Below, piece by piece: positions 3,101 to 50,026 of a stretch of DNA of 64,000 bases (positions are counted from its first letter, which is position 1; each line of letters begins with the position of its first letter). Under the pieces are notes generated by a model that had not been told where the DNA came from, did not search any database, and worked only from the letters and a program-made list of their open reading frames with translations. Source of the stretch: Paragordius varius (lineage: Eukaryota; Animalia; Nematomorpha); assembly GCA_964247055.1 (NCBI GenBank), contig OZ176053.1, positions 11,098,001-11,162,000 of the forward strand, written 5' to 3'. Made by a program: the position numbers and the translations under genes.

Positions 3101-6100
3101 TTAAAAAGGGAAAGCCCCGTCTCTGTCAGTACTATAGAATGATTGATATCACTAATAAACTATCCAAACTTCTTCTCAAGATTATACTCAAAAGAATCTC
3201 ATCCTCACTGGACTTTGAAATATCTGAGGTGCAGGCTGGCTTTAGAGCAAAGAGAAACACTGCTAATTACATAATAAATCTAAATACAATAATTCGAAGA
3301 TACAATGAATTTGGGAAAAGTCTATACTGATCCTTTTTAGACTTCAGTATGGCATTTGATACAGTCAACCACGATTGCCTATGGAACATATTACGATCCT
3401 CCGGAGTTTCTCCGCACATAACACTCTTGCTTCAATCGCTGTATTCTTCTCCGGTACGCCGACGACACCATCCTCTTGTCAGAATCCCACACGGATATGA
3501 CCTATCTTTTATATAATCTCACCATCGAAGCAAGTTTGATGGGTCTTAAGCTGAACCCAGCTAAATCTAAAATAATGATCCTAAACGCTCCACAACTACC
3601 ATTTACAATCAATAACTCCACCATCGAACTAACTGACCACTGTAAATATTTAGGCTCCATAATTACATCGGACGGTAGCTCGAATCCCGACATACGAGCA
3701 CGGCTAGCATTAGGACGTGCTACTATGGGTTATCTGTCCAAAATTTGGAACTCGTCGGTCATAAGACTTCCAACCAAACTTGCCATCCTGATGGCGATGA
3801 TATACTCCGTGGCAATTTATTGGTCCGAATCATGGATATGCAAATCCATTGACAAAGCCCGCATAAACTCTCAAATGTGGTGCTTTCGGAAAATATTGAG
3901 AATCTCCTGGAAAGCCCACATCTCCAATTACATCCTCAACCTCATCAAATCCAAATTTTTACTTCACAATTTAATAATCTTCAAACAGCTAAAATATGTT
4001 GGTCAAATCCTGCATCCGACTCGCTAGAAAAAACATACTTTTTCGGTTAATATATGGCACCCGCAGAAGGGGCCGACCCAAAAAGCGGTGGATCGACATG
4101 CTTAAATCAAAAACAAACCAAACTTTTCCTCAATTGTTGAGAGAATCACAGGATCGTCAAAAATGGAGAACTTTAATTTATGAGAAAGCCAAGAGTCACT
4201 ACATGACTAGCTTATAAGACACACACACACAAACTTTTAAGGACCTAATCAATATGTAATTAACCCAAAAAACCCACAAACCAAATCAAAAGCCTATTTG
4301 TTAATAATATATTTCGGGATAAAAAATTTTGGCTGGCCTCATACCACAATACATAGTACCAAATTATTAATAATTAAACCAACCATTTCATTAATGGTTA
4401 ATATCTCTTAAAAAATTATTCTATTAATGTGAACATATATGTATGTACGGAAAAAATAAAAATTTACGACCTAAAAATTTGAAAAGTGACAACATTTCTC
4501 AAAAAGGAAGACAAATCACAATAGTATTCCGTTACAAAAAAGGTTTTCCGTAATTTTCAACAATATAGTACATATACCTTGGTTCAATTGGTAAAGATAT
4601 CTCCCTCATATTCATATCACTCCCTAGACCAATCATTCGAGCTATCTGTCCAGAGTTTGGACCGCCTGCTATCACACAATGACTAAATTGAATCAGTTTG
4701 CGTCTCATAACACCATCCCCGTGATAATCTGCATTAATCTGCAAGTAACAGGCATTAATAATTGTCCGTAAAAAGACAATTTACTTATTATATAATCATT
4801 AATTTCTTTCGCTCAAGGAATTTTTATCTCAAGAACAAAAGGATTATAGCAATTTTATGGCTAGGGTATTCAATTTCAATTTGATCCAAATTTATTTAAC
4901 GTTTTCCGAAAATTTGTTTTCAACCATATATCAAAGAAAATATTATAAAAATTCTCATGCCCAACATTTGTGCAGGTATACTTATTAATAACTTTACTAA
5001 ACAGTGGTGTTTAAAAATTTGGTAAATGCAAAAACCGAAGGGTAAAAATAATTTTACAATAGCTTTGGAGGGAATGGTGGCATCAAAAAAGTTTTGTCGT
5101 TTAGCATCATACAATCGGGCCATGTTCATTTCCGTGAAACCGAGTAAACGCCCCTGAACAAAATGCGTATGGTAAAAGGCACAATAGTGTTTTAAGTGAT
5201 CCATTAATTTACAGGGATTATACCAACCCTCTTCGGACGAAGGACCTGTTTATGTACAAAATTGATTGGAATAAAATACGCATACGAGAGATATGTAAAT
5301 ATTTAGCATTATATTAATTTTCAAAGTTATTTTTAAAAACTGAATATATTCATTAATTATAAAAAGCAAAATAATAGTCATATATAACCATTTGTGAAAA
5401 AGGTTTAAAAAAAATTAAGAAAATCAAATGTTAAAGAGGACTATGATGTAAGAAAAAAAATTTAATTTATCATAAATGTGTGTAAATTTTTGAAAAATCA
5501 ATATTTTTATGAATTACGAGATTTAACTGAAAAAAAAACCATTTGTTTACTAACTATATGTGTACATCGTTTGTTTAATATGACTAAACTAACCTAAAGC
5601 GGCCAATTTAATGCCATGTGAATTGATCCAAGGATATTTATTTTCAAATTGTTGCGTGGTTAATATTTTAGATTTGCAATTATAATCCCTTCATTACATA
5701 TAAGAATATACCTTTGAATTTGATAATTCATTTTTAGTTGTTCGGCACCCTCGTCTGATGCCAAAACCAAATGTCCTTGAGAATGTAAATCGATGTCAAA
5801 GTCATTTATTATATGATCTAATTATAAATATAATAGTACCATTGATCGGTAATCGCAAATAATCAGACGTATTTTTTAAAAAATGAGAAGTAAAACGAGA
5901 CATTAGTATGTTTTCTGGTAGGGAATATGATTGTCTAAAACCACCCATTGATAGTGTAGAGGTTGATAAATTGTTCTAAAATTAAATTTATTATACATTT
6001 ATATCCTGATCAAGAATAGTAATTTTCATGTCTTTCTGTATAAAATATCTAAACCAGAAGGCGGTAGAAAGACCCATTAGACCACCGCCAATTATTAAAA

Positions 6101-6344
6101 TATCTGTTTCAAATGGGAAATCATAGTCATCGTGGATATAAGACAAGGGCTTAAAATCAACTTTTTTCGGTTGATAATCCAAATTTATCAAATTTTTAAC
6201 CCCCGTAAATATCCTTCCAAATGCCTCCTTTTCATGTCGAAGAGATCTTACAATTTTATTCCATGGATGATCGTTAAATGGAAATTCTGAATCGATGTTA
6301 GAAAATGACCTATATCGAATTCTAAAAAGAATTGATCTTGACAT
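126..6344 (-). CDS. FOXRED1: FAD-dependent oxidoreductase FOXRED1 (complex I assembly factor), 7 exons visible, 3' end beyond the left edge
   Basis: Exons 6344-5997, 5975-5840, 5817-5712, 5688-5594, 5245-5058, 4738-4578 and 261-126 join in frame at GT-AG sites. They give GxGxxG (IIGGGLMGLSTA), STLSMGGFRQSYSLPENI, GHLVLASDEG, KYPWINSHGI, EEGWYNP and LPIEPRKRYVYIVNCP, all collinear with the human FOXRED1 sequence as I recall it. Confidence 0.93.
855..1517 (-). mobile_element. 5'-truncated RTE/BovB-like LINE copy (RT C-terminus plus (CA)n tail), inverted relative to its neighbour
   Basis: Reverse complement of 3563-4231 with scattered substitutions. Encodes LAILKAMIYPVAIYGSESW and the RRRGRPKKRW region. 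(TG)n at 855-866. Confidence 0.92.
1520..4231 (+). mobile_element. Near full-length, inactivated RTE/BovB-like non-LTR retrotransposon (AP endonuclease plus RT)
   Basis: Endonuclease motifs LKIGNLN, IIGLSETH, IQAYAPT, SGDLNA, SQIDF and GSDHQL. RT motifs PFFKKG, QAGFR, DFSMAFDTVNH and LRYADDT. C-terminal YWSESW and RRRGRPKKRW. (CA)n tail 4220-4231. Several stops and frameshifts, and the QG..LSP segment is deleted at about 3448. Confidence 0.95.
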
Positions 6345-7631
6345 TATAAAAAATAAAATTTTATTTTAAGTTTTTTTTAAAGCATGGACCGTTTAAAAAA
6401 AGATAACACATGCTGATAGTACATTATATTTGTATATAGTGTCCATGAAACTATATACTCTGATAAGAAAATCTATTGGGAGTATCATAGTGCTTTTGGT
6501 TTAGTCACCTAAGAGTGATAGAATGTAATTTACCCTATTATAAATTCTTTTTATCAGAAAATAGAAAGATTTGCTTTAAAAATTTTCTGCGTGGCTAATC
6601 ACCAAAAAATAGCACCACAAATATACACTAAATACACCAGTGGCTCTCATCCTTTTTTGTTCACGTCCCACCAAATTGAAAAAAATTCTTACGCCCCATT
6701 TCCTCCCTCCGAAATAGCATGGATAAAAAGCAAAATAAAATATGTATGAATGTATTGATACATTTAAGTCCATTTCCATAATGAAGTATTTTTATCTTTT
6801 CACTATTTTATTATATACTATTATATTATGTAGGAACAAGTAAATGAAAAAACAATTAAATACAATGTGTATATTTAACAATCTAAAAATGAATACTTCC
6901 CAACTTTACATTTTAATTTAAATATAGCAGATAAACCAATTTACCAATAAATATTAAATATAATATTTATTAATATAAAAATCATTTCTCCAAATTTTTC
7001 GCACCTTTAAGAGTATTGCTCCCCTTATGGGAGCTACTGACGTACAGATTGTCCACAAAAAAACCCATAAATATGTAATATATATATATATATATATATA
7101 TACTGATAGGAACTCGTATTAGGTTTATCCCTGGTCTTGGTTTATTGAATCTTGCGAATGATTTAGCATAGGTCCTGTTGGGGTACTTTTATATCCCAGA
7201 GCGATTTGAGTTTTTAAAAAACATGATATTTGGCTTAATTAAAAATATGACTTTTTAGAGCGCATAAAATAAAAAATATTTTTTAACAAATGTAAATTGT
7301 AAAAAAAGCATCATTTCAAACTTTTTGGCCATCATTTTTTTCTTACATTTAAATCGCTAACACAATAGGCCAATAAATGTATATTATGTTTATAAAATGC
7401 AAATTTGATTCCAATTGACCTATCCAAATACTCCAGACAATATAATATTTTTAAGGTTGCAATTTAAATATATTCTTTTATCCTAATAAAAATATAAATA
7501 AGCCACAATTTAAAAATAATTTTTTGAAGTAGATTTGCGTATCAAACTACTTGGACACCTTTGAATCACTTTTTTGAAAACATCGTGTTTATTTGATTAT
7601 AAGCCTAAAGATAAGTTTACTTTTTTATTAA

Positions 7632-9047
7632 AACTATATTTGATACCGCATCCATTTCAGTCCTTCAATTCAAACTGGGGTAGTTGGATACCCCTGGCCT
7701 GTTTAAAATTAAATAATTCAAAAAATATGGAATGAATTGAAACCATGGCAAATTGCCATTTATAACCTTAATGAACCGAATAATATAAATAATTTTATTC
7801 AAAAATACTAGATATTAATTATTTTTGAGTAAAACCCCAAGGTAAAAATTTAGTCAACATTACATGTGTGCATAAGCTAATTTTAAAATAATACAAAATT
7901 AACCACTTTTTCTGTTTCCATCAATGTTAGATAAAATTTTAATAAAAAATTAGCTTTTATTTTGGCTATAAACTTAAATAAACACGATATTTTGCAAAAA
8001 TGTTGTAAAATAAAAATGGTGTCGAAGTAGTTTGATATGAAACTTTTTCAAAACCAAGTTTTATTTAGATATTTTGGCTTATTTCTATAACTTTTACTAG
8101 CGTGACGACTATGTTCGGCGCAATCGAAAATAAGACAAAAATCATATTTGGAATGATCCAACACGTTCTCCAGAAAATTGTCTCAAAGACACGATATCCG
8201 TTTTTCACACGGGGTGGGCCCGAACTAGGGGTCTATTTCAAAAAAAGGGCGAAGCTATTGTCGGGGAATTCATTAATGATTATATTTTTTCGATGTTTGT
8301 ATTTGAATGGGTCTACCGGTTTTCCGGTACCAGATCACAAAGCAAGCATTTTCCATTTTTATAAATATGTAGATTACCATAAATAATGTTTTATTATCCA
8401 TATATTTTTTAACATCCTATACATATGATAGATACTCCTTACTAAGCAGCTATCATCAAAGAAACGCTTGACTAAAATTTTTGCCTTTAACAGGGAACAC
8501 GTGGAATCCATATTAAATTTTTACGGTCTCATACCTAGGGCGAAAAATAGATTTAAAAAATTATTTTTGTGGACTTTGTTTTTTGAAAAAATGACATTTT
8601 ACGGGGATAGCGGATAAAAAGAGGGCCTAAATCATAAAAGTGAATCGACTATGTTCGGCGCAATCGAAAATAAGTAAACAAAAATCATATTTAAAATTGA
8701 ATGATCCAACACGTTCTCCAGAAAATTGTCTCAAGGACACGATTATGGACTTCTGTTTTCAAAATAACCCGTTTTTCACACGGGGTGGGCCCGAACTGGG
8801 GGCCTATTTCAAAAAAGGGCGAAGCTATTGTCGGGGTCTTCATTAATGATTATTTTTTCGATATTTGAATTTGAATGGGTCTACCGGTTTTTCGGTACCA
8901 GATACAAAGCCAGCATTTTCCATTTTTATAAATATATAGATTAGGATAGAAGCATATTAAATTGGGACCGTTTCTTTCAGTAGTTTTTAAAAAATTTAAA
9001 TTTAAATATAGTCTGGGGTATTTTGATACCCGATTTAAATCGAAGTG
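7632..9047 (+). mobile_element. piggyBac-type MITE (about 570 bp) interrupted by a Helitron
   Basis: Collinear with the 36719-37277 copy once 8097-8940 is removed. Right end ...CGAAGTG|TTAA (TTAA at 9048-9051). Left end degenerate. Confidence 0.75.
8097..8940 (-). mobile_element. Non-autonomous Helitron (core-linker-core)
   Basis: On the minus strand it starts A|TCtatatattt (8940) and ends ...gcgccgaacatagtcgtcacgCTAG|T (8097), with a subterminal hairpin and no TSD. The empty site matches the uninterrupted MITE at about 37165. Confidence 0.88.
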
Positions 9048-9149: not shown

Positions 9150-9338
9150 AAAAAGTAATATCAAATATTTTTAGTAAATTTTTTTCATATTTTGGTTTAT
9201 TAATTTTATATAAGTACAAACTTTTGCCATGGTTTCAATTTATTCCATATTTTTTAAATCATTTAATAAATAAGCCCGGCGCATATAACTACCCCAATTC
9301 TAATCGAAGGACTGAAATGAATGTGTTGTATCCAAGTG
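9150..9338 (-). mobile_element. Partial piggyBac-type MITE, inverted
   Basis: Ends ...GTATCCAAGTG|TTAA (9339-9342), the reverse complement of the TTAA|CACTTGGATAC terminus at 36715-36729. Left boundary approximate. Confidence 0.65.
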
Positions 9339-48207: not shown

Positions 48208-48598
48208 ATGCCCATCCTCACCTTGTACACTAATTTACATAAAGAGAAAATTCCAACGACTTTAACAAGTGAATTATCTGCTCTCATAGAAAAATGTTTG
48301 AACAAACCCGAATCGGTATAAGATTTTTACAATACTAGTATATATGCGTAATAGTTATACCAGATTGTAACATGATATTTGGTGGAAGTCATGAGCCATG
48401 TGGAATTATTAACTTAACATCTATTGGACAATTGGGTCGTAATAATAAATCACATTCACAAAATATTTCGCAATTTATTGAACATAAATTGGGTATATCA
48501 CCCTCTCGGTAAATATTAAATATAATCGTAGAATGTACATTAATTTTTATGATTCTCATCCTAATGATATTGGCTACAATGGTTCTACATTTGGATGA
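48208..48598 (+). CDS. MIF: Macrophage migration inhibitory factor (tautomerase), 114 aa, 3 exons
   Basis: Exons 48208-48315, 48339-48508 and 48532-48598 give MPILTLYTN...NKPESYICVIVIPDCNMIFGGSHEPC...SIGQLG...LGISPSRMYINFYD...IGYNGSTFG. Catalytic Pro1 and the Lys32 equivalent are retained. Intron positions match the usual MIF three-exon layout. Confidence 0.95.
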
Positions 48599-48619: not shown

Positions 48620-50026
48620 TTAAAAATAATTCCATATGGATGAAAAAAATGTTTTAATTTTACTCTTTATTCTTGTGTCAGTAAATATTGCAATATAACA
48701 CAATACTGCTACAAATAGTGAATCGAGGTTTTCTAAATAACCATCGATTTTTATGAGATTTGTTATTTTTTTTCTGTATAATTCTTCATAGTTGTTTATT
48801 TCAGAAGGAATTACGTTCCACACATGTTTGTCTAAACAAGTAACGTTAATATATGAGGACTGATTATCCATGATTTTGCATAATTCTGGCATATCGATGA
48901 GTAGTTTTTCGGTTTCTTTGTTATTGTATTGCCTAGTAAGATAAATTTTGGGGGCAAAAGTTCTTATATAATGTTTTCTCATAAAAATTGTAATTGATGT
49001 TGGAGTGTAGCAGAGCAAAAATAATAGGAGGTACAAAATTGATGAGATATTTTTAATAACATAACCTCTGATATGTTTTTTTCGATTACCTACTCCCCTA
49101 ATATTGGAATTGTTTATGGATTCATTCATATCATAAATGGATTGCCTGCTTACATTACCAATGTCGCTGATTTTATTAGTTTTTATATTTGGTTTTTGTA
49201 TTATAGATAATTCTTTATTTTGGACCAATTTATGGTCAAAAAATGCATTCTCTGCTCCATGTGATGACGGTGTCACACGTCTTATTTTCATTTTAATTTG
49301 TTGTATGCGTTCTTTTTTAGATAAAAATTTGCTTAAAGATATTGTGATATTTACTACCAGGAACAGTATTATAAGAGACGGTATCATGCAAAACAATACT
49401 TCACTTATAACTTCCATGTTTATTCTCCAGGTATCTGTTAAACTTGGTAAACCAATTATTTGACGGTAATACATAGTTCGTTGTTTTTTAATATCCCAAC
49501 ATTCCAGAAATTCGTAGTATTTGTCGGTCATAAAAGAAAATACAGTGATAGCTCCAATTAAGACCCAGGGTAAAAGATGTTTATACTTTCGACTCTGATA
49601 CTTGATTAGACCGTGGGGATTATTGATAGATAGATAACGGTTGTAAAGGAGAAAACATAGCAAAACACCCGACGTATCATTGAAAATAGAATACAGAATC
49701 CATTGATACCGTGTTATAAATACTAACCATCTCCTGTTTTCCACAAAAATTTCGATCCTAGTATCATGAATCAACATTGATAGCAATCGCAAAGAATCTA
49801 TTATACATCCAATCATATTACATATCATGATCCAAGATAAAAAATAGTCATGAAGTGTTGTACTTTTCAACCGCTTTATAATAAGGAGTACGGTTAAATT
49901 TGCAAAAATGCCTGTTAACACCAACGGTGTTGTAATATAGCGTTCGATAATGTTGAGAATGGGATCAAAATCGATCTCAGTAAGATTAGATGAGCAGATA
50001 GTTTTAACATTTAGATTCTCTGACAT
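48620..50026 (-). CDS. Orphan rhodopsin-like (class A) 7TM receptor, intronless, 468 aa
   Basis: Seven hydrophobic segments: TM1 GIFANLTV, TM3 YNRYLSINNP (DRY-like), TM5 CMIPSLII, TM6 FLLCYTP (CWxP-like). Long ICL3 and ECL3. Confidence 0.85.
   Translation of the reverse strand: MSENLNVKTICSSNLTEIDFDPILNIIERYITTPLVLTGIFANLTVLLIIKRLKSTTLHDYFLSWIMICNMIGCIIDSLRLLSMLIHDTRIEIFVENRRWLVFITRYQWILYSIFNDTSGVLLCFLLYNRYLSINNPHGLIKYQSRKYKHLLPWVLIGAITVFSFMTDKYYEFLECWDIKKQRTMYYRQIIGLPSLTDTWRINMEVISEVLFCMIPSLIILFLVVNITISLSKFLSKKERIQQIKMKIRRVTPSSHGAENAFFDHKLVQNKELSIIQKPNIKTNKISDIGNVSRQSIYDMNESINNSNIRGVGNRKKHIRGYVIKNISSILYLLLFLLCYTPTSITIFMRKHYIRTFAPKIYLTRQYNNKETEKLLIDMPELCKIMDNQSSYINVTCLDKHVWNVIPSEINNYEELYRKKITNLIKIDGYLENLDSLFVAVLCYIAIFTDTRIKSKIKTFFSSIWNYF

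Follow-up and report, generated by a model that had tools for sequence, protein, structure and literature searches.

Three probable introns of 21-23 nucleotides at ancestral sites in the FOXRED1 gene of a horsehair worm

A FOXRED1 gene in the 64-kb window (the window being the whole stretch of 64,000 nucleotides analysed here) is interrupted by three segments of 21, 22 and 23 nt. Judged from the DNA, these segments are real and very probably spliced out. The explanation we strongly favour is that they are ancient U2-type introns that shrank to 21-23 nt in a horsehair-worm lineage, and that the major spliceosome still removes them so that a normal FOXRED1 results. FOXRED1, or FAD-dependent oxidoreductase domain-containing protein 1, is a complex I assembly factor. 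An earlier note on this DNA had described the segments as spliceosomal micro-introns that coexist with a 4.3-kb intron. Going by their sequence, they appear to be genuine and obligatory introns of the spliceosomal type, and they are shorter than the 30 nt usually taken as the lower limit in animals.

Gene model and reading frame of FOXRED1

The gene lies on the minus strand. Coding exon 1 (6344-5997) encodes 116 aa, runs from the ATG to the FAD-binding GxGxxG and covers Pfam DAO 1-31; in a Pfam search of exons 1-7 this was the only exon to match DAO, and exons 2-7 gave no match. It is followed by micro-intron 1 (5996-5976, 21 nt, phase 0), exon 2 (5975-5840, 136 nt; Gordionus residues 131-175), micro-intron 2 (5839-5818, 22 nt, phase 1, within an Asp codon), exon 3 (5817-5712, 106 nt), micro-intron 3 (5711-5689, 23 nt, phase 2) and exon 4 (5688-5594, 95 nt). 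The remaining introns are longer: intron 4 (5593-5246, 348 nt, phase 1), intron 5 (5057-4739, 319 nt, phase 0) and intron 6 (4577-262, 4,316 nt, phase 2). They separate exon 4 from exon 5 (5245-5058, 188 nt), exon 6 (4738-4578, 161 nt) and exon 7 (261-126, 136 nt), the last of which matches Gordionus residues 356-400 at 24 of 45 positions. The gene continues past the start of the window. The coordinates, lengths and GT-AG ends given for the micro-introns in the earlier note prove exact on this strand, and the 4.3-kb intron that it placed in the same gene is intron 6.

Two repeat structures were observed in and near the gene. Intron 6 contains LINE-like reverse-transcriptase remnants at 855-1521 and 3559-4229. 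They lie in inverted orientation, 97% alike over 568 nt and with flanking arms in addition, and could pair in the pre-mRNA. Upstream of FOXRED1, a direct duplication of about 570 nt (8106-8948) is accompanied by inverted arms (7649-7752 and 9223-9323) and resembles what is left of a DNA transposon.

All three micro-introns have GT..AG termini and a GC content of 0.10-0.22, that is, 78-90% A+T. Phases 0, 1, 2 and 1 link exons of 348, 136, 106 and 95 nt without a stop, and the frame predicted by these cuts is the only one in which each exon is open. The earlier note had expected a stop in frame if the 21-nt intron were retained, and three are found. Retention of micro-intron 2 shifts the frame into a stop within 13 codons, and retention of micro-intron 3 does so within 18. 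We searched for alternative GT-AG cuts from about 40 nt upstream to about 80 nt downstream of each micro-intron. For introns 1 and 3, the cut in our model is the sole stop-free GT-AG option nearby; for intron 2, alternative cuts of 64 and 85 nt would cost 14 or 21 residues, a conserved strand included. The chance of finding GT..AG at three gaps defined by homology is about 1e-7, with three register slips permitted. Ultra-short introns have been defined as those shorter than 30 nt, located at conserved exon junctions and carrying reduced splice signals (PMC13644364), and the three FOXRED1 introns belong to this class.

The position of the gaps is fixed by homologous proteins. Exon 2 alone, searched against 1.84 billion representatives, has as its top match a FOXRED1-like protein of the horsehair worm Gordionus sp. 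m RMFG-2023 (62% identity, 44.8 bits), with a bird protein as runner-up (40.1 bits); seven of the eight matches looked up were FOXRED1-named or unnamed eukaryotic relatives. The same exon had no match in the PDB. The Gordionus protein XP_065322315.1 is the best FOXRED1 match. Among the 120 listed animal homologues it ranks first for five of the seven exons and has a summed score of 818 versus 597 for the next, a comparison based on one gene. From these exon scores, the source is very probably another horsehair worm, and by the names of its best matches and its shared intron positions, the host gene is an ordinary FOXRED1. No spliced FOXRED1 of the source species appears among the 120 homologues listed for the Gordionus protein.

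The Gordionus FOXRED1 is one uninterrupted reading frame without introns (L001:3001-4554), which makes it a natural spliced reference; being intronless, it says nothing on whether short introns occupy these sites in a second hairworm. We searched and aligned the spliced model exon by exon, and neighbouring flanks were joined only for stop tests and split codons. Junction 1 falls between Gordionus residues 130 (end of exon 1) and 131 (start of exon 2). At junction 3, exon 3 (15 of 34 residues identical to Gordionus) ends at residue 208 and exon 4 begins at residue 210, the split codon being 209. Of 119 further homologues, 116 fit junction 1 exactly and 112 fit junction 3 exactly. Junction 2 falls within a variable loop where the model already exceeds Gordionus by two residues, leaving no space for retained sequence. 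When five homologues were compared by tblastn, all five showed a 7-residue gap at intron 1. Removal of the three segments thus restores conserved FOXRED1, as the earlier note had held, both in the exon-by-exon match to homologues and in the stop-free chain.

Ancestral sites and other genes of the window

We compared the intron sites with the FOXRED1 loci of six other animals, whose introns were derived by exact spliced matching. Site 1 (phase 0, residue 131 in Gordionus numbering) is occupied by introns of 733 nt in a termite, 207 nt in a fish, 8,710 nt in a snail, 2,959 nt in a spider and 2,122 nt in an acorn worm. Site 2 (phase 1, residue 176) holds introns of 404 nt in the snail and 1,950 nt in the spider, within an Asp codon as in the source gene, and site 3 (phase 2, residue 209) holds introns of 88-2,752 nt in the termite, fish, snail, spider and acorn worm. 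FOXRED1 introns 4, 6 and 7 also coincide exactly with ancestral sites, and intron 5 lies within about four residues of one, in a poorly aligned stretch. The Priapulus locus, compared in the same way, has no site in common. Since the sites match ancestral introns in both codon and phase, the micro-introns are old introns that shrank rather than new insertions.

Two of the reference genes have unusual structures of their own. The Gordionus FOXRED1 is intronless, whereas at least seven ancestral introns are present in this genome; this suggests that the Gordionus gene was replaced by a retrocopy or underwent wholesale intron loss. In Priapulus (L002:501-15371) the gene has six introns, none at sites common to the other bilaterians examined, and its 3' half is one exon. 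It is possibly a retrocopy with newly gained introns.

Very short introns also occur elsewhere in the window. A MIF gene on the plus strand (48208-48597), likely highly expressed, has two 23-nt GT..AG introns (48316-48338 and 48509-48531), and its exons correspond to Pfam MIF 1-35 and 36-90. Its neighbour, a rhodopsin-family GPCR on the minus strand (48620-50026), is a single exon of 468 aa that lies tail to tail with it, the two stops about 25 nt apart. A candidate RING-H2 gene on the minus strand (53196-52431) reads without a stop through introns of 24 nt (53035-53012), 22 nt (52896-52875) and 162 nt (52793-52632), with homology for its last exon only (zf-RING_2, 1e-13). The start of an IDE gene, also on the minus strand (26476-24056), is without a micro-intron: its first coding introns measure about 256, 352, 304, 374 and 80 nt, with approximate boundaries. 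An acceptor-like sequence stands directly ahead of the apparent IDE ATG.

In total, the window contains five firm micro-introns and two candidates, versus at least eight longer introns. Both FOXRED1 and the RING gene have their tiny introns ahead of the longer ones. This order is not strict, and IDE counters a simple rule of distance from the start, because its first intron (about 256 nt) lies 441 nt past the apparent ATG, versus 633 nt past the ATG for FOXRED1 intron 3. We tentatively consider, as a possibility that is less than even, that single genes follow two size regimes, in which ancestral introns near the transcript start are 21-30 nt long and later ones reach hundreds to thousands of bases and bear transposons. 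A position-dependent splicing route would permit and select such an arrangement. An example is perhaps cap-proximal, co-transcriptional intron definition, maybe with altered U1/U2 factors.

Splicing of the micro-introns and alternative explanations

We infer that the micro-introns are removed by the major spliceosome. Each tiny intron would be recognised across its own length, that is, by intron definition. The 5' signal would be reduced to GTA plus an A or T base, the branch adenosine would sit in a YAAT motif just 5-7 nt ahead of the 3' end, and the AG acceptor would have a scant or absent pyrimidine tract. U1 and U2 would act sequentially and not together, as proposed for Stentor and myxobolids, and the lariat loop would measure 15-18 nt. 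The same machinery would also splice the FOXRED1 introns of 319-4,316 nt.

Several features of the sequence can be set beside this model. The three FOXRED1 and two MIF micro-introns begin with GTA plus A/T or C. All five contain YAAT with its A 5-7 nt from the 3' end (the branch-like A lies at -7, -5 and -6 in FOXRED1 micro-introns 1, 2 and 3) and 15-18 nt from the first G. Shuffling gives a product of probabilities of 3e-4 for this motif, but p is 0.14-0.27 for each intron, and the motif was picked after looking. Both micro-intron candidates of the RING gene misfit the YAAT pattern. A search of the 64-kb window against Rfam gave no match and no snRNA.

Published systems offer a precedent for such signals. 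Introns of myxobolids and Dicyema show weak A residues ahead of the AG and a 5' signal cut to GTa, and myxobolids retain the canonical U2 branch-pairing region and U2AF1/2 (PMC13644364). Stentor retains all snRNAs and SF3B1-6 and has its branch A at position 10 of 15, although it is without some peripheral proteins and its Cwc25 plug is altered (PMC9505925). By analogy with the myxozoan and Stentor precedents, with the core conserved in both, the reduced or altered snRNPs that the earlier note had put forward would be possible but not required. We also tried a U12-type assignment for the three micro-introns and rejected it, as the RTATCCTT 5' site and the TCCTTAAC branch are both absent; micro-intron 3 opens with GTATATTC, which is no more than a resemblance.

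Alleles from other individuals bear on whether the segments are what they appear to be. Three runs, X1, X3 and X4, from three samples and two studies, were compared over 4240-6500 (2,261 letters); they were classed as DNA because they cover the introns. A 444-nt contig of X4 spans 5566-6004, across all three micro-introns; it differs by four substitutions and a single insertion of 5 nt. The insertion follows position 6 of intron 2 and creates a 27-nt allele that keeps both ends and puts a stop in frame if retained. X1 has the same allele as its second haplotype, at a depth of 176 of 384. X3, from another study, crosses intron 3 at near-equal length (contig 5599-5818, with a 1-nt gap somewhere along it). 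The SNPs of intron 3 lie in its middle, at positions 7, 8 and 11, and spare both ends. Among the listed differences (the best-supported 40 of 168, where alleles sharing a haplotype are not independent), 9 of 11 exonic SNPs are synonymous versus 24% expected (P about 8e-5), including all eight in exons downstream of the micro-introns, such as the four in exon 5 and the three in exon 6. The best-supported 12 of 60 indels are all intronic. For the X4 contigs 5566-6004 and 5080-5255, the listed differences are the full count. Heterozygosity is high: across 367 nt of intron 5 and its flanks, 36 substitutions and 15 gap letters set the second haplotype of X1 apart. By the sequence evidence, the alleles show a FOXRED1 under purifying selection, whose protein would be possible only if all three pieces are removed.

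These alleles weigh heavily against two other explanations. FOXRED1 might be a pseudogene or a dying copy, its segments being unspliced insertions or introns too short to remove. A search of sequencing runs listed none of RNA for this region, the RNA-like run X6 has no sequence on FOXRED1, and the four runs compared show no splice joint. A splicing efficiency of about 25% is cited for the tiny introns of microsporidia, so partial retention would be plausible. However, the seven exons are free of stops, GT..AG is kept in every allele seen, no exonic indels are among those listed, and MIF shows the same micro-intron pattern. We therefore regard a dead gene as very improbable. Even less credible is an assembly artefact in which ordinary introns were collapsed or mis-joined to 21-23 nt. 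The run with the best DNA coverage may be the very sample behind the window assembly, but X4 is a different sample, and its contig across the three introns excludes assembly collapse; the intron 3 crossing in X3 comes from another study. Together, the 27-nt allele, the SNPs in mid-intron 3 and the synonymous downstream SNPs indicate neither a pseudogene nor an assembly error.

Other alternatives accept removal and question the machinery. An IRE1- or tRNA-type endonuclease and a ligase could act in place of the spliceosome, and XBP1-type introns are indeed similar in length to the 21-23-nt segments. Yet the segments have GT..AG at ancestral spliceosomal positions, one tolerates a 5-nt insertion in mid-intron, and stable junction hairpins were not found: folding around the FOXRED1 junctions was no better than in shuffles (z 0.28-0.74), which argues against this route. 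We give it hardly more credence than the artefact. A more serious candidate is that these are real introns whose splicing depends on a lineage-specific change in the spliceosome, acting alongside an ordinary route for long introns; this is compatible with our preferred explanation of shrunken U2-type introns. Factors of the U1/U2 snRNPs or of branching might have been lost or trimmed, or short introns might have a factor of their own, like human RBM17/SPF45; jointly, we rate these forms as possible but on balance doubtful. In their favour, 21-23 nt is far under the 50-90 nt of the shortest class in most animals, and two regimes coexist, because the gene also contains long introns, of which the longest carries both a CTAAT motif and a pyrimidine tract; the missing peripheral proteins and changed Cwc25 plug of Stentor also point this way. 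Against them, myxobolids splice 22-nt introns with the canonical branch-pairing region of U2 and with U2AF1/2.

Comparison with known systems and significance

In a 51-genome animal survey of September 2026, introns shorter than 30 nt were found only in myxobolids and Dicyema, and further cases were expected in parasites (PMC13644364). The precedents for such introns listed in the earlier note lacked the myxobolid myxozoans, with medians of 22-27 nt (PMC13644364). These myxobolids (Henneguya salminicola, Thelohanellus kitauei and Myxobolus rasmusseni) resemble the present case closely: their introns are 20-27 nt long, GT-AG, with 5' GTa, little pyrimidine tract and A residues near the 3' end, and short introns occupy ancestral positions and are clustered, in a parasitic animal (PMC13644364). 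Unlike them, the hairworm is an ecdysozoan, from a different phylum and with an independent origin of short introns. Myxobolids have reduced genomes in which the median intron is itself 22-27 nt, whereas the hairworm micro-introns stand beside introns of 319-4,316 nt in a repeat-rich region, where the first introns of the neighbouring IDE gene measure about 250-370 nt.

Dicyema japonicum (PMC13644364; see also PMC2222250) is likewise a parasitic bilaterian with introns of similar length and reduced splice signals, but it is a spiralian mesozoan with short introns genome-wide, in contrast to the mixed sizes in the hairworm window. The 15-16-nt introns of Stentor coeruleus share the GUA start, the AG end, a branch A some 6 nt ahead of the 3' end and AT-richness, and the Stentor snRNAs are conserved (PMC9505925). 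Stentor, however, is a ciliate whose introns are shorter and nearly one size, with a fixed branch position, whereas in the hairworm the candidate A ranges from -5 to -7 and even alleles of one intron differ in length. Human short introns that depend on SPF45/RBM17 are similar in forming a short subset beside long introns in one animal; the model intron there (bioRxiv 10.1101/784868) is 56 nt long, more than twice the length of the FOXRED1 micro-introns. What sets the FOXRED1 micro-introns apart from those of myxobolids, Dicyema and Stentor is their lineage and the presence, in the same genes, of multi-kilobase introns that bear transposons.

A literature search outside most subscription journals turned up nothing published on short introns in hairworms, and the word "intron" is absent from the main texts of the hairworm genome papers examined. 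New here are the ancestral position of the three sites, the intronless hairworm reference and the allele evidence. The hairworm would be the third independent animal case of introns shorter than 30 nt, and the first in an ecdysozoan. Because tiny and multi-kilobase introns share the same gene, the shortening cannot simply follow from genome compaction. Internal controls, including natural alleles of one intron of 22 and 27 nt, would be at hand for studying how short an intron the animal spliceosome can sterically accommodate. It is also a reasonable inference that the default minimum intron size used in annotation may cause gene finders to miss or break such genes, and broken annotation of this kind bears on claims of gene loss in the hairworm phylum.
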